From: Ranitomeya imitator
Taxonomy: Eukaryota
Assembly: GCF_032444005.1 (NCBI RefSeq)
Contig: NC_091285.1
Coordinates: forward strand, 119,598,001 to 119,662,000
Direction of reading: 5' to 3'
DNA: 64,000 nucleotides
Numbering within the stretch: position 1 is the stretch's first letter; each line of letters starts with the position of its first letter. Positions 2,666-31,118 of the stretch are shown here, piece after piece. The notes under the pieces are model-generated. The model searched no databases. It worked only from the letters and a program-made list of their open reading frames with translations, and had not been told where the DNA came from. Made by a program: the position numbers and the translations under genes.

Positions 2666-2766
2666 CGGGAGCGTCGCTCTGTGAGGCCCAGACTGCGCCG
2701 GCGCTTGCGCTTGCGCAGTCTATAGAGGCTTCGGACAGAGTGACGCTCCCAGCGTTATATTATAGA

Positions 2767-3226
2767 CTAGAGAGAGTACAAAGGAGGGCAACAAAATTAA
2801 TGAAGGGGATGGGAGAACTACAATACCCAGATAGATTAGCGAAATTAGGATTATTTAGTCTAGAAAAAAGACGACTGAGGGGCGATCTAATAACCATGTA
2901 TAAGTATATAAGGGGACAATACAAATATCTCGCTGAGGATCTGTTTATACCAAGGAAGGTGACGGGCACCAACATAGAAGAGGATTCTTTACTGTTAGGG
3001 CAGTGAGAATCTGGAATTGCTTGCCTGAGGAGGTGGTGATGGCGAACTCAGTCGAAGGGTTCAAGAGAGGCCTGGATGTCTTCCTGGAGCAGAACAATAT
3101 TGTATCATACAATTAGGTTCTGTAGAAGGACGTAGATCTGGGGATTTATTATGATGGAATATAGGCTGAACTGGATGGACAAATGTCTTTTTTCGGCCTT
3201 ACTAACTATGTTGCTATGTTACTATG
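2767..3226 (+). mobile_element. CR1 LINE 3' fragment with a 43-bp internal deletion
   Basis: Encodes [11 protein letters not shown]...LGLFSLEKRRLRGDLITMYKY, has a (TATGTTAC)n-type tail, and is nearly identical to the 3' end of the CR1 at 10131-12689. Confidence 0.95.
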
Positions 3227-5243: not shown

Positions 5244-8200
5244 GAAGTAACCGGGGAAGGCAGAGTATTTCCAGGAAAGGAAATGTGTGTGATGATGCTT
5301 CTTGGCCAACAAATGTCCTTGAAGATAAATGCCTACTATCTGCTGTATACAGATCATACCAATTTTATTTAAGCAAAATATGTTTAGTTATGAAATGTAG
5401 TCTGCCTCAAAAAAGTCTGTAACATCTGGTCCTGGCCAGCTGAAGACAATGGCACCATGTGGTCTGCAGAGGCGTAAAAGTCCAAACACCCAGTCAGCAC
5501 CCGTATTTTCATGTTGAGTGCAGGGGCATGGAACATGAGTACCTTACCCATAGCTACTGCCCTCAGTCATGTTACACTTACATCCCTAATGTCAAAAGAT
5601 GTCTGATAACTAATCATGTGAAAGCCTAAAGAAATTGTGCAGTCTGTTATCATGCAAAATTACAAAAAATGTATAAAAATGTGAAAACAACCTAAGCATG
5701 AATATCTGGCTATATCCCAGCAATGAATAAAGATCTCATAATGGCAATAAACACTAAAACTCCTGCCAACGACAGCGAAAAGAAGTAACTCAGATAGTAA
5801 TATGCAGTATAATTAGACGTTAGGTGACCCACCAAACCCAAAGCACATTTCACTATGCTGTATTAATCATCATTCTTGAGAGACATAATGTATGTAAAGA
5901 GGGCCAAACATTCTAAACAAATTTTTGTCAGCTATATTTTCAAATGGTGTCAAATTTAGTCTCACTATGTCAAATCTTACACTGAATTATAGTAATAGTT
6001 TCTTAATAGCACAGATGGCATTGTCATACACTATACACAGATTATAGCAGATATCACATTTCAATCAGTATCAAGAGGAATCAAAACAAAACAAACTTGT
6101 TATATCAGATTCCCTTTAATGTTCCACACATGAACAAACCTAAAGCTACTTCAGCTTTCCAGAAATCAAAGAGCATGGAGAAATACTGTGAGCTGTAATG
6201 AGCTGCAGATTATTCAAGAAGTGAACTGGTTAAATATCTTTGGATGTAGCACATACACCTATTGTAACTAGTGCTCACTTAAACATCAATAGTCAGATTA
6301 TCAAACTTTGCTGGCTGCATTTGTACATCTGTCTGCTCCAACAAGACTCAGGGCAGCAGACTTTAGTCTATTAGAATGACAGGTAGGCCTCCTTCTAACA
6401 ACCGCTTTTTACTCTCCCTGACAAATGCGCTCTGTGCCATATTTGACATATGTGTCGTAATCAGGACTGATGGATAGGGACGCCAGCTCTGCCGAAAGTA
6501 CCCCCCGATTTAATGTGAGCGATTTGTCAAACGTGCTACGGTTGCACTGCTGTCAGACACAGACCAGAAAACATTCTGTCATCTCTGCACTAACCAAGGT
6601 CGTTTTGGCAGGTGCAGAAGAGATCTCCAAGAGATGTCCATGGTCGTAGATGGTAATATGACTGGCCTACTTTTCATGTCTGATATTGTTACAGCCAAAA
6701 TAACATGTAAAATATGAATCAATGACATAAAAGATATGCTATTATGTTAAGTGATAACCACACAATGGAAATAAACCTTAAATAAACAGCATCCAGTTAC
6801 ACAATATCTTAGCATTTAGGGTAAAACAGGCCAGAGGAGAAAGCCTGAACAACACTGCTTAAACTTAATAGAGATGATAGTGGACTCAGGGGATGCACGA
6901 CACAAAAGTACTTTGCAAACAATTGCAAAATTGAGATTCATATGTAACAATCGCCAGCTTGTCAGGGTGCAAGGCCTAAGCTATATTTATTTCTCACATT
7001 TGGATAATATGTCTTAAGCATGTGTAGATTTTCCCAGAAATAACAAGCACATACTCTAATGTCATAGGCAAATACTATATGGCATATACAGCAAACATAG
7101 CATACATCTACACAGTATCCTTCTGGACAATAAACATACACAACATAGAAAGCCAATACAGAACAAAAGAGATTGCCTCAGGTTATTAAATGGTTAAAAA
7201 TGCTCTTGTAAAAACTTTTACCTCTTGTTAAAAATCTTCAGTTTTACAGTTTACCGACTTATCTGTGGTCTCAGAGTGGTGGCTAATCATAGCACTGAGT
7301 GCTCAGCGTACATATATGTCACATGCATCAATGGTATCAATAACAAATAAAGTGCGGCACACATAACAAGCCTTCATGTAGACCTATCAGAAAAATAAAA
7401 CAGGTACATTTCATAAAAATATATTTTAGCCGGCTTAATAAGTAAAAAAAAACCTATTCAAGTTTATACACAGACATTTGTGCAAACAAAATACAAAAAA
7501 CGATGGCAGGAAGGCTTTTTTTTCAATATCCTCCCACTCGTCATTTTTCCCCCAATTTTTCAGTACATTGAATATTTAATTGATTGGTGTCTTGAAAACA
7601 ACTTATCAAACAAAAACAACCCCTTTCACAGCTATTATTGCAATGGAATATAATTGGTATTGTACCTGGAAAAAGGATAGGAGAAAAACAAAGAACAAAA
7701 ATGAAAAACAAAATATCCCTGTCCTGAAAGAGCTAATACTGATATTTTCTAATGTGACAGCTAAAAGTATAAAAAACATGTTAACTAATCCTTACAGGTC
7801 AAGGCATCCAGGGAGAAAGCAATCTTTATGAAATTCTGTGATGTATTTTACACCCAGTGCACAGCTCAGCTAAAAACTTCTTTCCTTTTTTATTCCAAAA
7901 TTCATTGTTATATTTTGGTCTAATCATTCTTATGAGGAAAAGAGCACAGTATCCACAAATATTGGTGTAGTTTAGAAGACTTTCTAATTCCATGCAAACC
8001 ACGTATAGAAAATGTATTTTTCAAGCAGAAAAAAGGATGGGAATATATGAAGACTATAAGAAATGTCATTCAATTAAGTCATGAATTAAACTACATAAAT
8101 GATTATGGTGAGGTATTATAGTACAGGTTAATTCTCTAGCCAGGAACCAACAGAGACACTGTGCATAGAGATAACCCGCAATTTATGTCCACCATCCCTT

Positions 8201-8636
8201 GCAGCTGTGTCAGTCAATCAGAAAATAGATACCGTAATACTAAGGGGTTGCAGCAGACAAAAATTTGTGTCTCTTGATAAAAACGTCATCTAGATACTAT
8301 ATATAAGCATTGCTGTCGCCAACAGGAGAAATACAGTGCATACCATACAGCACTGACCAGCCTTACCTTTCCACAATTCATCAAAAAGAAAGTATTCCCA
8401 TATTATAAAGCAAGTATAGTTAGACAATGTGAAAATAAGCACGTGTCTTGATTTTTCCACTTGCTCTCATTCAACTGCAATGAGAACTTTGCTTTCAAAA
8501 TATTTTATTGAATTTTAACTTTAACCGGTAAGGATTGGTCAGGAAAGGGAGGAGGGGAAAGGGTGGGGTATGGAGGTAGGGAAAAACAAACCCCCTAACA
8601 ATAGGGGAGACAGGCGTTCATACAATAGAATTGTAT

Positions 8637-8825
8637 AAACATAGTAAGATAACAAGTACTTTGTGCAGTTTCGCTAAAACATAGTGGTTTAGGTTGGAAT
8701 AACGCAATAGGCTATAAAACTGACCTAGGTAAACACAATAAGATAATAAGTACTTTGTGCAGTTTCGCTAAAACATAGTAGTTTAGGATGGAATAACGCA
8801 ATAAGCTATTAAACTAACATATGTA
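8637..8825. repeat. Two-copy ~94-bp tandem duplication in the HAL1-like 3' UTR
   Basis: AAGTACTTTGTGCAGTTTCGCTAAAACATAG occurs at 8654 and 8748. Confidence 0.9.
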
Positions 8826-10130
8826 AAGTTTTATGTAGAATCGTTGAGTAAGCATCTAATACCATAATGATTAACTAGTAGGTAGTAGTATACGAAAGCC
8901 TGTTATGAACTTTTGCTTAATGTATGGTATGTATCAACTCTGAAGCTGTTCAGTAAAAATAGATAGTATGTAAAGGTCTGTCGACGCGAGGTCATCTCCA
9001 GATGACCCTCGGACCGTTGGTGGGTCAATGTCCGGTTCAAATCAGTAAGAATAGTAAGTGGAGAATTAGCAAGTAGCATGAGGACTGTTAGTTGGCTGGG
9101 CTATTTGTAGGCCAAGAAGAGAGATTACATGGGATAAGAAGAGTCTGTTGAGGGTGAGAACGAGCGGTTGTGAGAGCCCGATGAGTGAAGTATGCCGATT
9201 TTTTCCAAAAAGACGATTCCTTCTTCCGGAGTTGCGATGAGAGTTAGTTTTGATGCATATTTGACTCGTATGGTGGAAGTCTGAGACCAATAATAGGGAA
9301 TTCCTGTGCGTAGTAGTTCTCTAGTAACGCAATCAAATGATTTCCTTTTTTGGATCGTGGCTTTAGACAAGTCTTTGAACAGAGTTATTTTGTCATATGG
9401 ACTTGGGAGGGTTTTAAATTCTTTGTCAAGTCTAAAAGGTCATTCCTTACCCACCTAGGGTAAAAGGATACTATAACGTCTCTTGCAACGTCTGGAGGGA
9501 GAGATGGTGGCCTTGGGATTCTGTATGACCTCTCAACCAGATTCGTCACTCTGGAGGTGGGTAACAGCTTGGATATCATGGTGGAGATGTAGTTTTTTAA
9601 TTGGAAGGGTTGGATCGCCTCAGGGATCCCATCTGATTTTTAAGTTGTTCTTTCTTTTAAAGTCCTCATATTTGATTAGGTCTTCCCTAAATAAGAGGAT
9701 GTCGTTTTTTATCCTTTCCAGGGAGTCTGAGTATAGGGACGGGTTATTAGTATCCTTTGGAGGTGGGGTTTTACCGTTTTGGAGTATCCTGTCGGCTGTT
9801 TTTGGAGTGAGTGAAGAAAGGTTGTGGGCTTTAGTAGGAATAGGTTTGGGGGCTTTCACAATGGCTGACAGTGTGTCTGTTAGTAGTTTTTTGATAAAAG
9901 CCTCTGAGGCCGTTGTTTCAAGGTCAGATGTCAAATTGTATTTGATGCCGAAGTCTCCTCCTGTGGTGTTCACCGATGATAAAAAGGCCTCACATATTTT
10001 AACCATAAATCCGACAGATGGAGAATTTTTTGAAGCGGGAATGCTGTCCATTATGAGCAAATTATGGGAGTATATCCTAGACTCCCTTGAAGTATGCCTC
10101 AGATTAGGGTTCTTTGTAGTAGAGTGTTGT

Positions 10131-12689
10131 AACATAGTAACATAGTAACATAGTTAGTAAGGCCGAAAAAAGACATTTGTCCATCCAGTTCAGCCTATAT
10201 TCCATCATAATAAATCCCCAGATCTACGTCCTTCTACAGAACCTAATTGTATGATACAATATTGTTCTGCTCCAGGAAGACATCCAGGCCTCTCTTGAAC
10301 CCCTCGACTGAGTTCGCCATCACCACCTCCTCAGGCAAGCAATTCCAGATTCTCACTGCCCTAACAGTAAAGAATCCTCTTCTATGTTGGTGGAAAAACC
10401 TTCTCTCCTCCAGACGCAAAGAATGCCCCCTTGTGCCCGTCACCTTCCTTGGTATAAACAGATCCTCAGCGAGATATTTGTATTGTCCCCTTATATACTT
10501 ATACATGGTTATTAGATCGCCCCTCAGTCGTCTTTTTTCTAGACTAAATAATCCTAATTTCGCTAATCTATCTGGGTATTGTAGTTCTCCCATCCCCTTT
10601 ATTAATTTTGTTGCCCTCCTTTGTACTCTCTCTAGTTCCATTATATCCTTCCTGAGCACCGGTGCCCAAAACTGGACACAGTACTCAATGTGCGGTCTAA
10701 CTAGGGATTTGTACAGAGGCAGTATAATGCTCTCATCATGTGTATCCAGACCTCTTTTAATGCACCCCATGATCCTGTTTGCCTTGGCAGCTGCTGCCTG
10801 GCACTGGCTGCTCCAGGTAAGTTTATCATTAACTAGGATCCCCAAGTTCTTCTCCCTGTCAGATTTACCCAGTGGTTTCCCATTCAGTGTGTAATGGTGA
10901 CATTGATTCCTTCTTCCCATGTGTATAACCTTACATTTATCATTGTTAAACCTCATCTGCCACCTTTCAGCCCAAGTTTCCAACTTATCCAGATCCATCT
11001 GTAGCAGAATACTATCTTCTCTTGTATTAACTGCTTTACATAGTTTTGTATCATCTGCAAATATCGATATTTTACTGTGTAAACCTTCTAAAAGATCATT
11101 AATGAATATGTTGAAGAGAACAGGTCCCAATACTGACCCCTGCGGTACCCCACTGGTCACAGCGACCCAGTTAGAGACTATACCATTTATAACCACCCTC
11201 TGCTTTCTATCACTAAGCCAGTTACTAACCCATTTACACACAATTTCCCCCAGACCAAGCATTCTCATTTTGTGTACCAACCTCTTGTGCGGCACGGTAT
11301 CAAACGCTTTGGAAAAATCGAGATATACCACGTCCAATGACTCACCGTTGTCCAGCCTATAGCTTACCTCTTCATAAAAACTGATTAGATTGGTTTGACA
11401 GGAGCGATTTCTCATAAACCCATGCTGATATGGAGTTAAACAGTTATTCTCATTGAGATAATCCAGAATAACATCCCTCAGAAACCCTTCAAATATTTTA
11501 CCAACAATAGAGGTTAGACTTACTGGCCTATAATTTCCAGGTTCACTTTTAGAGCCCTTTTTGAATATTGGCACCACATTTGCTATGTGCCAATCCTGCG
11601 GAACAGACCCTGTCGCTATAGAGTCCCTAAAAATAAGAAATAATGGTTTATCTATTACATTACTTAGTTCTCTTAGTACTCGTGGGTGTATGCCATCCGG
11701 ACCCGGAGATTTATCTATTTTAATCTTATTTAGCCGGTTTCGCACCTCTTCTTGGGTTAGATTGGTGACCCTTAATATAGGGTTTTCATTGTTTCTTGGG
11801 ATTTCACCTAGCATTTCATTTTCCACCGTGAATACCGTGGAGAAGAAGGTGTTTAATATGTTAGCTTTTTCCTCGTCATCTACAACCATTCTTTCCTCAC
11901 TATTTTTTAAGGGGCCTACATTTTCAGTTTTTATTCTTTTACTATTGATATAGTTGAAGAACAGTTTGGGATTAGTTTTACTCTCCTTAGCAATGTGCTT
12001 CTCTGTTTCCTTTTTGGCAGCTTTAATTAGTTTTTTAGATAAAGTATTTTTCTCCCTATAGTTTTTTAGAGCTTCAATGGTGCCATCCTGCTTTAGTAGT
12101 GCAAATGCTTTCTTTTTACTGTTAATTGCCTGTCTTACTTCTTTGTTTAGCCACATTGGGTTTTTCCTATTTCTAGTCCTTTTATTCCCACAAGGTATAA
12201 ACCGCTTACACTGCCTATTTAGGATGTTCTTAAACATTTCCCATTTATTATCTGTATTCTTATTTCTGAGGATATTGTCCCAGTCTACCAGATTAAGGGC
12301 ATCTCTAAGCTGGTCAAACTTTGCCTTCCTAAAGTTCAGTGTTTTTGTGACTCCCTGACAAGTCCCCCTAGTGAAAGACAGGTGAAACTGTACAATATTG
12401 TGGTCGCTATTTCCTAGATGCCCGACCACCTGCAGATTTGTTATTCTGTCAGGTCTATTAGATAGTATTAGGTCTAAAAGTGCTGCTCCTCTGGTTGGAT
12501 TCTGCACCAATTGTGAAAGATAATTTTTCTTGGTTATTAGCAGAAACCTGTTGCCTTTATGGGTTTCACAGGTTTCTGTTTCCCAGTTAATATCCGGGTA
12601 GTTAAAGTCCCCCATAACCAGGACCTCATTATGGGTTGCAGCTTCATCTATCTGCTTTAGAAGTAGACTTTCCATGGTTTCTGTTATTT
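10131..12689 (-). mobile_element. 5'-truncated CR1 LINE with stop-free ORF2 remainder (C-terminal half of APE endonuclease, complete RT, C-terminus) and intact 3' tail
   Basis: Motifs MGDFNYPDINW, LLDLILSN, LGNSDHN, NYRPVSLTS, YLDFSKAFD, SGVPQGSVLGP, IFADDTKL. (TATGTTAC)n tail and 5-bp TSD GTTGT at 10126-10130 and 12690-12694. Confidence 0.96.
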
Positions 12690-14082
12690 GTTGTGAGAGA
12701 GAACCCTGAAAGTCGGGACTTTGGGGATCGTTAGGGCCCTCTGAGTAAGAGTGTAAAGAGGAGGAACAGGAAAACTCTTCCCTATACAAAAACTCACTCC
12801 CCTCCAGAGAAGAGGACTCTGCCATATCTGAGAGGTCCTCCGAGTAGATACTCCCCATCTCCCCCACAGAGTCAGAAAGGACGTCGAAGTCAGGGTGTGC
12901 GACCTGGCATGAAGTCACTAACTCTAAATGTTCCTCCATATCATTTCCTTCTCCTATAGTAGGGACCGACTCCTTTCCAGAGACCTGAGATGACTTAAAA
13001 TTCAAGTTCCTAAGCAGTTCTGCGAATGATGCCTTCCATTCGTCAAGGTTAAACTCTTTAGGGCCGCAGGAAGAGTCAGGAGGGGAAAAGGTGACGACCT
13101 CCCCTGTTGTAGAGTAAGTGTGAGGTCCTACATAGGGCTCAGTAGGAGATCCTGCGTCTGTCATTAGCTGCATTTCTTTATGATTATAGTTGTAATTGTC
13201 ATCTCCGGAATTTGCTGTATATTGTCTTTTGTCTGGTATGTCCCTGTAGGTCTTGTCCCCCTGTAAGTTCCCTGTGAGTTTCAGGCTCCTATTAGGGGAT
13301 TTAGGGGTGGCACACCTCTTTTGAAGTTTATGGGGCTGCAGTATACCGTCGTGTTGTTGGAGCGGTGTGGAGTTCACTGTATCAGATGTGCACTGTGCAG
13401 CTCTGTCTTCCCCATTAGATCTCCACTGTGTGGGCATGTTGTGAGCCTTTAATTTGTTGGTATGCTGACCATTTGCCGGTGCAGATAGCCTGCCCCGGTC
13501 TCCATAAGACCTCCGGAGTGTGTGGGTGTCCCCATCCCCCTGCAGAGTCCCGTAGCCAGTAGCCGCCGCCATTTTATCTTCCCCCCTGCAATCTCCTGCC
13601 TCCGGGAAGGTTCCACTGCGGGCTCCCGCTTCCTTACCAGTATAAGGGTCACCGGGTCTTCCCTGCTGCTTCAACGTGGTCTCTCTCTCTGGCGCCGATT
13701 CGGTTCCCGTCCACAGCTTCGGCACAAACACCGGAGCGCTGTGCCTCAGCCGCGACGGGGCGGGCGCCATCTTGTTTCCCGCTCCGCATCTGACAAGCTG
13801 AGTTTCCTCTTTGTCCCGGTCTCTGTGCTCAGCGCTGCAGGTATGATCCGGGGCCGTGGCAGCGGTGGGTTTCTTACCGGTCAGGGGCTTTTTATGCGGT
13901 GGTGCTTCCTGCTTCTTCGGCTTGTGCTGGGTGAGGGGAGGGGACCTCTTGGTCTCGGCATACCCGGTCAGCGTCTTTTCCTGTGTCTTTAGGCCTCCGT
14001 TCATTTTAGCTCCTCTCTGGTTCCAGGCTGTATTAATCTTCTTGGGAATACATCCCTTCTTGGCTTGACTGGCTCCTGGCAT
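10243..14082 (-). CDS. Chimeric open frame of 1279 aa: HAL1-like ORF1 N-terminus (464 aa) fused in frame to CR1 partial EN plus RT
   Basis: Uninterrupted ORF in the track (10243-14238). The first ATG inside the element is at 14082 (MPGASQAKK), and the junction is at ..GSLSQ|QITETMESLLLK.. Expression is unknown. Confidence 0.6.
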   Translation of the reverse strand: MPGASQAKKGCIPKKINTAWNQRGAKMNGGLKTQEKTLTGYAETKRSPPLTQHKPKKQEAPPHKKPLTGKKPTAATAPDHTCSAEHRDRDKEETQLVRCGAGNKMAPAPSRLRHSAPVFVPKLWTGTESAPERETTLKQQGRPGDPYTGKEAGARSGTFPEAGDCRGEDKMAAATGYGTLQGDGDTHTLRRSYGDRGRLSAPANGQHTNKLKAHNMPTQWRSNGEDRAAQCTSDTVNSTPLQQHDGILQPHKLQKRCATPKSPNRSLKLTGNLQGDKTYRDIPDKRQYTANSGDDNYNYNHKEMQLMTDAGSPTEPYVGPHTYSTTGEVVTFSPPDSSCGPKEFNLDEWKASFAELLRNLNFKSSQVSGKESVPTIGEGNDMEEHLELVTSCQVAHPDFDVLSDSVGEMGSIYSEDLSDMAESSSLEGSEFLYREEFSCSSSLHSYSEGPNDPQSPDFQGSLSQQITETMESLLLKQIDEAATHNEVLVMGDFNYPDINWETETCETHKGNRFLLITKKNYLSQLVQNPTRGAALLDLILSNRPDRITNLQVVGHLGNSDHNIVQFHLSFTRGTCQGVTKTLNFRKAKFDQLRDALNLVDWDNILRNKNTDNKWEMFKNILNRQCKRFIPCGNKRTRNRKNPMWLNKEVRQAINSKKKAFALLKQDGTIEALKNYREKNTLSKKLIKAAKKETEKHIAKESKTNPKLFFNYINSKRIKTENVGPLKNSEERMVVDDEEKANILNTFFSTVFTVENEMLGEIPRNNENPILRVTNLTQEEVRNRLNKIKIDKSPGPDGIHPRVLRELSNVIDKPLFLIFRDSIATGSVPQDWHIANVVPIFKKGSKSEPGNYRPVSLTSIVGKIFEGFLRDVILDYLNENNCLTPYQHGFMRNRSCQTNLISFYEEVSYRLDNGESLDVVYLDFSKAFDTVPHKRLVHKMRMLGLGEIVCKWVSNWLSDRKQRVVINGIVSNWVAVTSGVPQGSVLGPVLFNIFINDLLEGLHSKISIFADDTKLCKAVNTREDSILLQMDLDKLETWAERWQMRFNNDKCKVIHMGRRNQCHHYTLNGKPLGKSDREKNLGILVNDKLTWSSQCQAAAAKANRIMGCIKRGLDTHDESIILPLYKSLVRPHIEYCVQFWAPVLRKDIMELERVQRRATKLIKGMGELQYPDRLAKLGLFSLEKRRLRGDLITMYKYIRGQYKYLAEDLFIPRKVTGTRGHSLRLEERRFFHQHRRGFFTVRAVRIWNCLPEEVVMANSVEGFKRGLDVFLEQNNIVSYN

Positions 14083-17022
14083 AGTATAAGTGATCCAGGC
14101 AGCCAAAATTCCACTTTTGTACGCTTTTTGTAGGCTTTCTAAGGGAGATTGCCAGGAGCTCCTGTGAGACACGTCTGCTCCCTTCCCTTGGCAAACCACG
14201 CCCCCTTGCAATGAGAACTTTGATCTAACATTATGCACAGCTTATTTGCGCAGCAGTTACATTCCAGGCTGATGAGTTAAATACTGAGATACCAGCCACC
14301 TCTCCATTAATTTCTATTACAGCAGTTGGATGTTGTCTTCTCCCTCCATCTTAGCTCTTCGTCAAGCTGCTGTTATCAGTCTTGCCGAGGAGAAGCCACC
14401 AGAGATTGGCCTATCTGACTAGTCTTCTGTGCGGCTTGGTCCCCGGCAGCTATGCAACTATGTTGCATAGCTTGGTCCCCGGCAGCTATGCAACAGCTAT
14501 GCAACTATAGCTAAACTCACGCAGCCAGGGTCTGATACATACTGACTGTGAATCAGGCCGCAGGTATCATCTGTCACAGTAGCATAAGCTCAGAAGGAAA
14601 AAGCTACTAACCCAGAACTGTCACTCAAGCAAAAGTGTTCACTCCTATAGCAACAAGAGTGTGAAAGAGACAAGAATGCTGGATGCTGCTCAAGACACAA
14701 CTTGAAAATAACCATTTAAGAGATAAACTTTATTACTATACCAATTTAATACATTATTGGGAGAAGCTAGCTAAAGCCCTGACTGGCTGCAAATACCTCA
14801 CAATCACTGGGAGGCCACATGTGCGAATATATAGTCTACAACTATCCTAACAGGATATCATAACATTATTTTTCAAAGCTGGTCATGTTGTGCCACACAT
14901 CTTGAGATGTGTTAGGTCAGGAGAAAAAGGTAAAGAAATGCACCTCTGTATATATGACAGGTTTGCAAAAAGATGCATCAAAGTAAAGTGGAAAAGAAAG
15001 TGTTTGTTGCGGAATATCCATGACTACTCCATTTACCTAAATTGGGGTTTACACAAAACTATACCGATGCTGCAGAAGATCATTTAGATATATGTAAGAT
15101 TTTTTAGCGTGAATAGATCCAAAAGTGTCTTAACAACGCTATTGATAACTGTATACAGTGAATGTAAAGAATTCTTGTATGATTTATTTTGTACTTAATA
15201 TTCATGCCACTAAGCCAATCTAAATGTTCACAATCACAATGTTCCCTTCCTTTTCTACACCCATCTGAGATGTTCAATATTCAGGTAGCCATTAGTCAAT
15301 CTAGGGTGGTAGATCAAAGAACCATAATTTTTTTTCTCTACTCAAATTTTGAAAAATATTATAATTTTTTTTTTTACTACTTTAGCACCCTAGTATTTTT
15401 ACTGCTCCGGTTAAAATTCATGATGAAAGAATGGTCCAGACAGAAGGCCCCTGAGCAAGAACAATGGCTGGGTCCTTCTTTGGGGGTGGTAGTGGACCCC
15501 CTTATATCTTGATCCCCTGTGTGGTCCCCAATGGCATGTCCACCCCTGATCCAGATTTATCATTAGATCTTGGCACTCTCTAGGTTGCTCTAGTTACATA
15601 GATTACTTGGAAACAAAGCAGTGAATATTCTGCAGAGGTTGAGAATGTAATAAAGCTTTGTTTTTTGAGCATTGAGGGAAACGTATAACACTGTTATTAA
15701 TTCCTCTGTTTCAAAAGAATAAGTCTCTGGATGCTACGGAGAGTTTGTTCACCTTGACTTCACATTACATATTTCGACCCTTTAGGAAATCCCAGTTAGC
15801 ATCAATTCTTTTCCTTTTGCCATCATCAATAAAATACAGATGGTTGGACAGCATGGCGACTAAACACTCCAGGGGACTGACATACACAAATTGAAACTGT
15901 TCATGGGAGCTATTCCTGTTTTGCTGCAGCTGATCAGGTCAAGCAGAAAACTGGCAGTCAGAAAAAGAACCGACTTTGGAAAAAATTAAGATTGTCAATA
16001 TTTGGAAAGCTACATCAATAGCAGGTAGCAACATCTGGAGAAAATTATACCAACTGATTCCACACTCGAGAGAAATTAAATAACACTCAACAATGCAAAT
16101 TACAGAAAGAAAAAAAGACATTTTTGTCGAACAGAAAACAACGGCTTGACTGTGATGAAAACAAAAGCCTGTTCCATACTACCTTATGGACTTGTTCGCA
16201 TAGTTCAGTATTGGTATCAAACACTGCGCCAAACTTCTATAATGTGAACATGGTCTTAGGGAGCATTTTAACAGAAAACATATACATCTCTTGCTTTATT
16301 CCATCAGAGATGTGTGGAAGTTCCCTTTGAAAGTGCTGAATTTTCAGTAACAAATATGTACCCAGTGACTAAATGGTTTAAGTGCCTTTATAAGTCCTAT
16401 CAATCTTAAAAACAGCGCTATTCTCAGATCACAAGGCGACCTGCTCACATGTATCTCTGAAATATAAGAAGATTATTTTCACTTGGTCTTACCTTTATTG
16501 AGAAATTGTGATGTGAATAACATAGCCAAGTTTTGGTAAAATGACCTGTCATTGTATTCTTGCTGCCCAAACCTCGGGCAGCATGAATCAGAGCCTGGCT
16601 GGCCGCACTATTGCAGCCATGTGCTTTACTTTACAATGCGGCAGCATTTCAGAGAATACATAATTTGAAAAACCATCTGGCTTCTTCTGACTCCAGTTTA
16701 TTGACATGTATCTTCCTATGTACAGACACGTGAGAGAACTGTTAATCAACTGATGATGGGCGCGGAGAAGCCAGCCGCAGACTGCATTGGAGAGCGAGCC
16801 GGGGCTGTGCAGTCAGGTCAGTCTCTGTAGTACCCTGCCAGCTTGTCAGATTATGCAGCAATTCAGAGTAAAACACCCCAAGCTGCAATCACACACAAAG
16901 ACTATGACTAATGGTGCCCGTACTTTGAGCAGCATGAATCTAATGAGAGGTTCCCTTTAAACATAAAATAACATGCAAAACAAAGCATGTACAGCATTAA
17001 CCCCTTAATGCTATTTGACATA

Positions 17023-20112: not shown

Positions 20113-22660
20113 TGTAGCATCCTGGATAGGACCTGTGCACAGTATATACCGTATGGCAATAAACATACTAGAAATAGGAGGAAACCAATATGGCCAAATA
20201 GAGCTGTAAGGGGCGCAATAAGTGACAAAAAGAAAGCATTTAGAGAATTAAAGGAAGTAGGTAGTGATGAGGCATTAAATAAATACAGAAAATTAAATAA
20301 ATTCTGTAAAAAGCAAATCAAGGCAGCAAAGATTGAGACAGAAAGACTCATTGCCAGAGAGAGTAAAAATAATCCCAAAATATTCTTTAACTACGTACAT
20401 AGTAAGAAACTAAAAAATTATAGTGTTGGCCCCCTTAAAAATAGTCTGGGTGAAATGGTGGATGAGGAAAAAGCCAATATGCTAAATGACTTTTTTTGAT
20501 CAGTATTTACACAAGAAAATCCCATGGCAGACAAAATGATCAGTGGTAACAAAAATTCCACATTAAGGCTATGTGCACATGTCAGGATTTCTGGCAGAAA
20601 TTTTCCTGACAAAAACCTGACATTTCTGCTAGAAATCCGCATGCGTTTTTTTCTCGCGGTTTTGATGCTTTTTTGCGTGTTTTTTATGCGTTTTTGATGC
20701 GTTTTTTCCAAATGCATAGAATAGCGGGGAAAACGCAGAAAATCTGCAAAACTAATGAACATGCTGCTTTTTTTACTGCAATGTGTCCTTTTCGTGGAAA
20801 AAAACGCATCATGTGCACAAAAATTGCAGAATGCATTCTAAATGATAGAATGCATAATGTATGCGTTTTTATTGAGTTTTTATCGCGTTTTTATTATGAA
20901 AAAACGCGGAAAAAAACGTGAAAAAACCTGAACGTGTGCACATACCCTAAATGTCACCTGCTTAACCCAGCAGGAAGTACGGCAGCGTCTAAAAATCACA
21001 CCCTCGAGTACTGCAGGAATTAAGTACAGTCATTGATAGAGCATTATTTTAATCTTCAAAGACTCCATAATAACAGGGTCTGTACCACAGAACTGGCGTA
21101 TAGCAAATGTGGTGCCTATATTCAAAAGGGGACAAACACTGAACTCGGTAATTATAGGCCAGTAAGCTTAACCTCTACTGTGGGTAAAATCCTGGAAGGC
21201 ATTCTAAGGGATGCTATACTGGAGTATCTGAAGAGGAATAACCTCATGACCCAGTATCAGCACGGGTTTACTAGGGACCATTCATGTCAGACTAATCTGA
21301 TCAGCTTCTATGAAGAGGTAAGTTCTGGACTGGACCAAGGGAACCCAGTGGATGTAGTGTATATGGACTTTTCAAAGCTTTTGATACGGTGCCACACAAA
21401 AGGTTGATACATAAAATGAGAATGGGGATAGGGGAAATTATGTGTAAGTGGGTTAAGAGCTGGCTCAGGGATAGGAAATAAAGGGTGGTTATTAATGGAG
21501 CACACTCGGACTGGGTCGTGGTTAGCAGTGGGGTACCACAGAGGTCAGTATTGGGCCCTCTTCTTTTTAACTTATGTATTAATGACCTTGTAGGGGACAT
21601 ACAGAGTAGAATTTCAATATTTGCAGATGACACTAAACTCTGTAGGGTAATCAATACAGAGGAGGACAATTTTATATTACAGGATGATTTATGTAAACTA
21701 GAAGCTTGGGCTGATAAATGGCAAATGAGCTTTAATGGAGATAAATGTAAGGTCATGCATTTGGGTAGAAGTAATAAGATGAATAACTATGTGCTTAATT
21801 CTAAAACTCTGGGCAAAACCGTCAATGAAAAAGACCTGGGTGTATGGGTGGATGACAAACTCATGTTCAGTGGCCAGTGTCAGGCAGCTGCTACAAAGGC
21901 AAATGAAATAATGGGATGCATTAAAAGAGGCATAGATGCACGTGACGAGAACATAATTTTACCTCTATAGAAGTCACTAGTTCGACCACACTTAGAATAC
22001 TGTGCACAGTTCTGGTCTCCGGTGTATAAGAAAGACATAGCTGAACTAGAGCGGGTGCAGAGAAGAGCGACCAAGGTTATTAGAGGACTGGGGGGGTCTG
22101 CAATACCAAGATAGGTTATTACGCTTGGGGCTATTTAGTTTGGAAAAACAAAGACAAAGGGGTGATCTTATTTTAATGTATAAATATATGAGGGGACAGT
22201 ACACAGACCTTTCTGATGATCTTTTTAATCATAGACCTGAGACAGGGACAAGGGGGCATCCTCTACATCTGGAAAAAAGAAGTTTTAAGCATAATAACAG
22301 GCATGGCTTCTTTACTGTAAGAGCATTGAGACTATAGAACTCTCTGCCATATGATGTTGTAATGAGTGATTCATTACTTAAATTTAAGAGGGGATTGGAT
22401 ACCTTTCTGGAAAAGTATAATGTTACAGGGTATATACACTAGATTCCTTGTTAGGGCGTTGATCCAGGGAACTAGTCTGATTGCCATATGTGGAGTCAGG
22501 AAGGAATTTTTTTCCCCAAAGTGGCGCTTACTATTTGCCACATGGGTTTTTTTTGCCTTCCTCTGGATCAACATGTTAGGGTATGTTAGGTTAGGCTATG
22601 GGTTGAACTAGATGGACATAAAGTCTTCCTTCAACCTTAATAACTATGTTACTATGTTAC
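20113..22660 (+). mobile_element. Degenerate 5'-truncated CR1 LINE (second subfamily) with a MITE insertion
   Basis: ORF2 fragments (KNNPKIFFNY, NYRPVSLTS, MDFSK, SGVPQRSVLGP, IFADDTKL) carry stops and frameshifts. Ends in a (TATGTTAC)n tail. Confidence 0.93.
20567..20947. mobile_element. PIF/Harbinger-type MITE inserted in the CR1
   Basis: TIR GG(C/G)TATGTGCACA and TAA TSD. Removing it restores CR1 NSTLNVTCLTQQEVR. Confidence 0.9.
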
Positions 22661-30952: not shown

Positions 30953-31118
30953 NNNNNNNNNNNNNNNNNNNNNNNNNNNNNNNNNNNNNNNNNNNNNNNN
31001 NNNNNNNNNNNNNNNNNNNNNNNNNNNNNNNNNNNNNNNNNNNNNNNNNNNNNNNNNNNNNNNNNNNNNNNNNNNNNNNNNNNNNNNNNNNNNNNNNNNN
31101 NNNNNNNNNNNNNNNNNN
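30953..31118. other. Assembly gap (166 N)
   Basis: Run of N. Confidence 1.

Follow-up and report, generated by a model that had tools for sequence, protein, structure and literature searches.

In mammals, L1 has given rise to non-autonomous derivatives known as half-L1 (HAL1) elements (Smit 1999; Bao and Jurka 2010, as cited in PMC5753468), and, according to the account given in PMC5753468, they arose independently several times. Here, we describe a comparable locus in a frog. The stretch analyzed, referred to as the window, comprises 64,000 nucleotides (nt) of Ranitomeya imitator (assembly GCF_032444005.1, contig NC_091285.1, positions 119,598,001 to 119,662,000). On its minus strand, at window positions 8492–14206, lies a unit flanked by a target-site duplication (TSD) and composed of a 3,151-nt L1 derivative with open reading frame (ORF) 1 only and a nested CR1-like long interspersed element (LINE). 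Like the mammalian HAL1s, this unit encodes only a homolog of the L1 ORF1 protein (ORF1p), contains no ORF2, is multi-copy, and presumably uses L1 ORF2p in trans. It differs from them in its frog host, in an ORF1 of ~797 amino acids (aa), in an N-terminus of ~590 aa predicted to be disordered, in a coiled coil of only ~4 heptads, and in a copy that lacks poly(A). The frog host points to an origin independent of the mammalian HAL1s, and the literature searched contained no report of HAL1-like elements in amphibians.

With a probability of about 0.7, we consider the locus to be a full-length copy, now dead, of a young half-L1 of a dendrobatid-type frog, an element that is multi-copy and non-autonomous, kept the L1 5' end, ORF1, and a 3' untranslated region (UTR), and has no ORF2. 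If this is true, loss of ORF2 with retention of ORF1 is a recurrent route of L1 evolution across vertebrates, and the frog element would provide a second, independent system for asking why an L1 parasite retains ORF1. Elements of the HAL1-like kind are already known; what is new here is the ~590-aa N-terminus, which is predicted to be disordered and holds two conserved islands, one of them matching the core of the PAM2 motif.

A perfect 16-bp TSD, TGCAATGAGAACTTTG on the plus strand, brackets the unit, with one copy on the element's 5' side (14207–14222) and the other on its 3' side (8476–8491). It is the longest word common to both flanks and occurs at these two sites only in the whole window, which bears out the first-pass annotation of this DNA, and its length fits L1-type target-primed reverse transcription, for which TSDs of 7–20 bp are characteristic. 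Read on the minus strand, the unit begins with AGGGGGCGTGG at 14206 and ends with AATAAAATATTTTGAAAG at 8492. Excision of the CR1-like insertion (2,564 nt taken out) leaves 3,151 nt, in agreement with the ~3.15 kb originally proposed. The 5'UTR (14083–14206, 124 nt) opens with the G-rich, L1-style start that the annotation had described and presumably contains an internal promoter; a scan of the unit's 5' end for bacterial-type promoters, a type of scan not applicable to this DNA, gave no match. The 3'UTR (8492–9124), annotated as ~630 bp and measured as 633 nt, has no protein-domain match, ends in TTTTGAAAG, and carries the expected AATAAA at 8509–8504, 12–17 nt before the unit's end. Within it, a 94-bp tandem duplication occupies 8636–8827 (2.0 copies, 89% identity), and raised contig depth over this segment is expected because the segment is doubled.

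This copy contains no ORF2, as had been claimed. A tblastn search of the window with frog L1 ORF2 matched two LINEs and nothing else, the nested one and one at ~42.7–43.3 kb, and in the host unit outside the CR1-like insertion nothing endonuclease-like or reverse transcriptase (RT)-like was found; within the unit, tblastn and Pfam both match the nested LINE alone. The 3'UTR was considered as a hidden ORF2 remnant, a candidate rejected because none of its frames gave a Pfam match. No second copy of the host unit is present in the 64,000 nt, and an exact-word scan of metagenome contigs did not find it. Other copies, as a family would require, do exist in DNA runs of the same organism. Host-derived contigs in these runs are 1–4% divergent with a word depth of 80–100; contigs from two runs join position 10124 straight to 12689, without the CR1-like insertion; and a 476-nt contig of another copy (3.6% divergent) covers 8867–9342, reading from the ORF1 stop into the same 3'UTR. 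These observations support a multi-copy state of the host unit in the same organism, and the amplifying unit is probably an ORF1-only family. Small shares of the unit's words also occur in runs labeled as other organisms.

The insertion nested within the unit (10131–12688, minus strand, same orientation as its host) is a 5'-truncated LINE whose product comprises the terminal part of an endonuclease domain together with an RT (Pfam RVT_1, 1.6e-34). Its 3' side ends in a (TATGTTAC)n repeat, and a 6-bp TSD, TGTTGT, flanks it at 12689–12694 and 10125–10130. The label CR1-like is adopted from the first-pass annotation. Because the other host copies lack this insert, its insertion is secondary. The same comparison explains an uninterrupted ORF of 1,331 aa at 10243–14238 (minus strand), in which the N-terminus of the host ORF1 runs on into the endonuclease remnant and RT encoded by the nested LINE. 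A designed ORF1–RT fusion was rejected on the grounds that other host copies have no CR1-like insert, and the long frame is thus a chance in-frame insertion. Two further CR1-like copies lie in the window at 2757–3226 and 20118–22660, with identities of 90% and 72%, and the summed word depth of this family in the runs is ~1e6 versus 150–400 for the host element.

Once the insert is removed, ORF1 extends from the ATG at 14082 to the TAA at 9127–9125 (2,394 nt, 797 codons), and its halves on either side of the insert share one frame. The N-terminal part (12689–14082, 464 codons) is followed by a middle part in the same frame (9743–10124) and then by a short coiled-coil segment (PSLYSDSLERIKNDILLFREDLIKYEDFKRKNNLKIR; 9632–9742) running into the RNA recognition motif (RRM), the RRM piece itself (9412–9639), and a C-terminal domain (CTD) piece that includes the stop codon (9125–9439), all on the minus strand. 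In this copy the frame is broken twice, near 9631 in the RRM piece and near 9411 in the CTD piece, so the 797-codon ORF is reconstructed rather than intact, and the pieces were searched one by one. At both positions, most contigs of other copies show a 1-base length difference from the window, which indicates that the breaks belong to this copy alone or to a few copies at most short of the majority. The N-terminal open frame of 505 codons exceeds those in all 2,000 shuffles of that stretch (maximum 241), so the stretch is coding now or was until recently; the indels listed in the N-terminal part of ORF1 are of 6, 6, and 3, or form a −1/+1 pair. The description of the element as complete therefore holds for its two ends and TSD and fails for its coding capacity: with two frame shifts and the CR1-like insertion, this locus is a dead, full-length copy. 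The annotated ~800-aa ORF1 with a short coiled coil agrees with the 797 codons and with a coiled coil of ~30 residues.

The relationship of the C-terminal part of ORF1 to L1 was established through frog relatives. The 104-aa CTD piece, used as query in a full HMMER scan against 1.84 billion representatives, matched 56 proteins; wherever their sources were looked up, these were a frog or a Logan run. The top match was the R. imitator protein P0002 (XP_069614618.1; E = 1.1e-12, 47% identity), and searches with P0002, whole or restricted to its C-terminal region, matched only P0058 (XP_069609349.1) and P0010, both from R. imitator. A profile of P0002 and P0058 recovered the window's RRM piece at E = 2e-27 and its CTD piece at 3e-17. 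When 15 frog relatives were combined with the two window pieces, the resulting profile matched human LINE-1 ORF1p (PDB 2YKP/2YKO) at E = 2e-19 over both RRM and CTD, and the human ORF1p RRM–CTD entry 2LDY at 1.4e-18. A feature search assigned the CTD piece to PF17490 clusters (score 0.94), and phmmer searches of the PDB with the RRM and CTD pieces returned chance matches only.

Fold and trimer models were made on the intact relative P0002 rather than on the broken ORF of the window. The AlphaFold2 (AF2) model of P0002:450–625 reached a mean predicted local distance difference test score (pLDDT) of 87.9, and its ten best Foldseek matches in the PDB were all human L1 ORF1p (E = 4e-9, TM 0.70). 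The coiled coil aligned to the P0002 segment spans ~30 residues, or ~4 heptads. Modeled as three chains, P0002:420–625 scored 0.60 against 0.00 for the best control, a value that may reflect prior learning of the human trimer structure by the predictor. Of 30 proteins solved as pairs of one chain, 21 reach the 0.60 mark, and of 23 solved as single chains, none does. Across the trimer runs, contact agreement was at least 76%, the partner pLDDT was 76, and the interface over residues 430–460 was heptad-spaced. Judged by these profile and fold comparisons, the C-terminus of ORF1 is the RRM and CTD of an L1 ORF1p, and the RRM/CTD motifs noted in the first-pass annotation reflect real homology.

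Compared with the type II ORF1p of human L1 (PDB 2YKO, 2YKP, 2YKQ, 2LDY), the frog protein has the same order of coiled coil, RRM, and CTD and may, as modeled for P0002, trimerize through its coiled coil; it differs in its identity of ~22% and in its very long N-terminal extension, and its ORF1 is more than twice the usual length. In ordinary frog L1 ORF1p, exemplified by P0005, the coiled coil spans ~90 residues, against ~30 here. The closest resemblance is to P0002 (625 aa) and P0058 (678 aa), which share the whole architecture, including the disordered N-terminus, both islands, the short coiled coil, the RRM, and the CTD. Their RRM and CTD regions are 47–49% identical to the window pieces, yet they represent different lineages. 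P0002, an intact single-exon protein of the L1 ORF1p type, carries the RefSeq name 'mucin-3A-like', presumably because of its Pro/Ser/Thr-rich N-terminus. For annotation, it is of practical note that Pfam ORF1 models overlook such proteins and that RefSeq names an intact relative after a mucin.

An autonomous frog L1 is also available for comparison. The 6.1-kb Logan contig L001 encodes a bullfrog-type ORF1 relative, P0060, and downstream of it an ORF2 whose match to human L1 ORF2p stands at 2.6e-154; since P0060 precedes a true ORF2, this type of ORF1 belongs to true L1s. The RRM and CTD of P0060 are homologous to those of the window at ~31% identity. Apart from its ORF2, L001 differs in its ORF1p, which is 383 aa long, contains a long coiled coil, and lacks a PAM2-like motif. 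An L1 of the L001 type would be a candidate donor of ORF2p. Positions 6040–6100 of L001 and 8492–8515 (minus strand) of the window end in similar A/T-rich words (AAAATT-x-AATAAAA ... TTGAAA), a likeness between frog L1 3' endings that may reflect a shared 3' recognition or cleavage site, or chance.

The ~590 aa upstream of the coiled coil contain few hydrophobic residues and are predicted to be disordered. A single-sequence AF2 run on the N-terminus gave a pLDDT of 40.5 and one helix, at residues 346–362, a result that fits disorder and that, made without an alignment, carries little weight. The first-pass annotation had called this region mostly low-complexity. Predicted disorder over most of its length agrees with that description; the region is not featureless, though, as it holds two conserved islands, the only parts in which the N-termini of P0002 and P0058 can be aligned with the window. 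The second of these lies upstream of the coiled coil, as TASEAFIKKLLT in the middle part of ORF1 (9743–10124) and as TASGTYIKDALT and IASESYIKDALT in the relatives (P0002:360–375), the shared pattern being TAS-x-x-[FY]IK. When the 505 aa of the N-terminal open frame served as query in a word-indexed protein search, P0001 was the sole match. This R. imitator protein (GCA_958301615.1) is a model of RARS2, the mitochondrial arginine-tRNA ligase, whose first ~160 residues are 81% identical to this ORF1 (from MAPAPSRLRH...) and are followed by the ligase; either an element copy supplies the first exon and promoter of the gene, or the gene model is chimeric.

The first island, SRLRHSAPVFVP (13720–13755, minus strand), resembles PAM2. 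This motif is defined by Leu3, Ala7, and Phe10, and a refined version, Phi3-x-(P/V)5-x-A7-x-x-F10-x-P12, adds Pro12, with a polar residue at position 4 (PMC2854688). The MLLE domain of PABPC1 binds the PAM2 motifs of Paip1/2, eRF3, Ataxin-2, Tob, and PAN3 (PMC2854688), and these motifs show the same 12-residue arrangement of Leu3, Ala7, Phe10, and Pro12 within a disordered region. All four of these residues are present in the window's island and in its counterparts in P0001 (SRLRHIAPVFVP), P0002 (RTLNYNAPVFIP), and P0058 (RTLRYDAAPFTP), the core reading TLNYNAPVFIP and TLRYDAAPFTP in the relatives. Unlike the defined motif, which has Asn or Ser at position 4 and Pro or Val at position 5, the window version has Arg4 and His5; across the four proteins, Asn4 occurs in P0002 alone, and position 5 is His or Tyr rather than Pro or Val. 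Strict PAM2-type matches numbered 3 against 0.26 expected among the window's N-terminal piece and 57 proteins, a count in which the window and P0001 represent a single family and from which the island of P0058, read by eye, is left out. The motif was absent from all 54 shorter ORF1p relatives examined. The Pfam PAM2 model (PF07145) was the sole Pfam match on the P0002 segment, at a sub-threshold E of 0.016 (15.3 of 20 bits), and gave no match to the window's version.

These comparisons raise the idea that the ORF1p may recruit poly(A)-binding protein (PABP) directly, through a conserved PAM2-like motif in a disordered N-terminus that precedes a minimal coiled coil. Tentatively, and with more doubt than confidence, we propose that the N-terminus, rather than being junk, could serve as an adaptor whose PAM2-like island docks on the MLLE domain of cytoplasmic PABP. 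In an ORF1p deprived of its own ORF2, such docking would tether the ribonucleoprotein (RNP) directly to PABP and to the poly(A) and translation-termination machinery, as a device to win ORF2p in trans. It is at this machinery, on current views, that L1 ORF2p acquires its template. The literature searched contained no retrotransposon ORF1p with a PAM2 motif and nothing tying PAM2 to L1 ORF1p.

A plausible life cycle can be outlined for the half-L1. The unit would be transcribed from its own 5' end, and its RNA cleaved just past AATAAA at the 3' end. Translation would yield an ORF1p of ~797 aa with its disordered N-terminus of ~590 aa, a coiled coil of ~4 heptads that presumably still trimerizes, an RRM, and a CTD. 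This protein would coat its own RNA in cis, and the resulting RNP would borrow both enzymatic activities, endonuclease and reverse transcriptase, from an autonomous L1 in the same genome. Mobilization in trans by L1 ORF2p would then proceed by target-primed reverse transcription at a T-rich nick, here 5'-CTTTG/AT, yielding the 16-bp TSD. After insertion, this copy acquired its two frame shifts and the 5'-truncated CR1-like LINE, the latter prolonging the ORF in frame by chance.

Several observations weigh against this account. The unit's 3' end has no A-tail, and the primed strand of the target, 5'-CTTTG/AT, is a degenerate version of TTTT/AA; the first-pass annotation had already pointed to the missing poly(A) and TT/AAAA target. 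Both features are unlike the usual poly(A)-primed products of L1 ORF2p and do not fit neatly with L1-type retrotransposition, so that the partner could instead recognize the RNA 3' end or be another LINE. The HMMER comparison with Transposase_22 and L1 ORF1 profiles that the annotation had suggested failed on all pieces: Pfam searches of the four ORF pieces gave no L1 family and neither Transposase_22 (PF02994) nor Tnp_22_dsRBD (PF17490) at E ≤ 1, and on the relatives the ORF1 models reached only E = 0.0025–0.0058, under the gathering cut-off. We read this failure as one of models that probably do not reach these frog sequences rather than as a sign of non-membership in L1 ORF1p. Among the coding-part variants listed, 6 of the 23 substitutions are synonymous and 17 non-synonymous, so purifying selection is not evident, and the runs that contain 5–23% of the unit's words were only guessed to be RNA, which makes them weak evidence of expression. 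Contig depth, moreover, is not equal to copy number, and with this locus as the only copy read end to end, some other copies may carry ORF2 between the ORF1 stop and this 3'UTR. That last point leaves room for a one-off event, in which a normal full-length L1 lost its ORF2 by a single internal deletion during or after insertion and no ORF1-only family exists. Such an event would not account for the 3.6%-divergent contig of another copy, which bridges the ORF1 stop into the same 3'UTR; contig depth is also roughly even from the unit's 5' end through ORF1 to its 3' end, and the supposed breakpoint bears no trace of ORF2. A one-off deletion is accordingly improbable in our judgment.

The features of the 3' end bear on a different question, namely whether the ORF1-only unit was copied by a LINE that recognizes the RNA 3' end (a stringent-type L1 lineage, or a clade such as CR1/L2) rather than by a poly(A)-priming L1 ORF2p. 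The A-tail is missing despite an AATAAA 12–17 nt from the end, CR1-like LINEs are hugely abundant in this genome, the GAAAG that closes the element is similar to the CAAAG that opens the TSD, and the bullfrog L1 transcript on L001 has a similar AATAAAA...TTGAAA ending. The last two likenesses make priming at the RNA's own 3' end a live alternative, albeit one we regard as unlikely, given that a 16-bp TSD fits L1-type insertion. Its CR1 version meets further difficulties: the nested CR1-like insertion generated a TSD of just 6 bp and terminates in a repeat of 8 nt absent from the host, and the host unit shows no 3' similarity to the CR1 copies of the window. It would be more surprising still if the copies were retrocopies or paralogs of a host gene domesticated from ORF1 in the manner of L1TD1, and not a transposon family. 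NCBI does annotate two intact R. imitator relatives as genes, namely P0058 and the single-exon, 625-aa P0002 ('mucin-3A-like'), the latter with no RT gene annotated within 10 kb. The many copies at 1–4% divergence speak against a host gene, however, as does the presence of a 5'UTR of the unit's own and a TSD with no poly(A), unlike processed pseudogenes; the several divergent lineages (47–54% identity) are what transposon families show. A half-L1 mobilized in trans by L1 ORF2p thus remains our preferred explanation.

Two minor observations concern neighboring and related sequence. In the window, a run of 166 N at 30953–31118 marks an assembly gap or masked sequence. In Eleutherodactylus coqui, contig L007 carries an L1 with a related ORF1 (P0048), apparently interrupted at 12159–13562 (minus strand) by a Penelope-like element with RVT_1 and GIY-YIG domains; an endonuclease ORF lies downstream at 16077–16835 and may belong to the P0048 L1.

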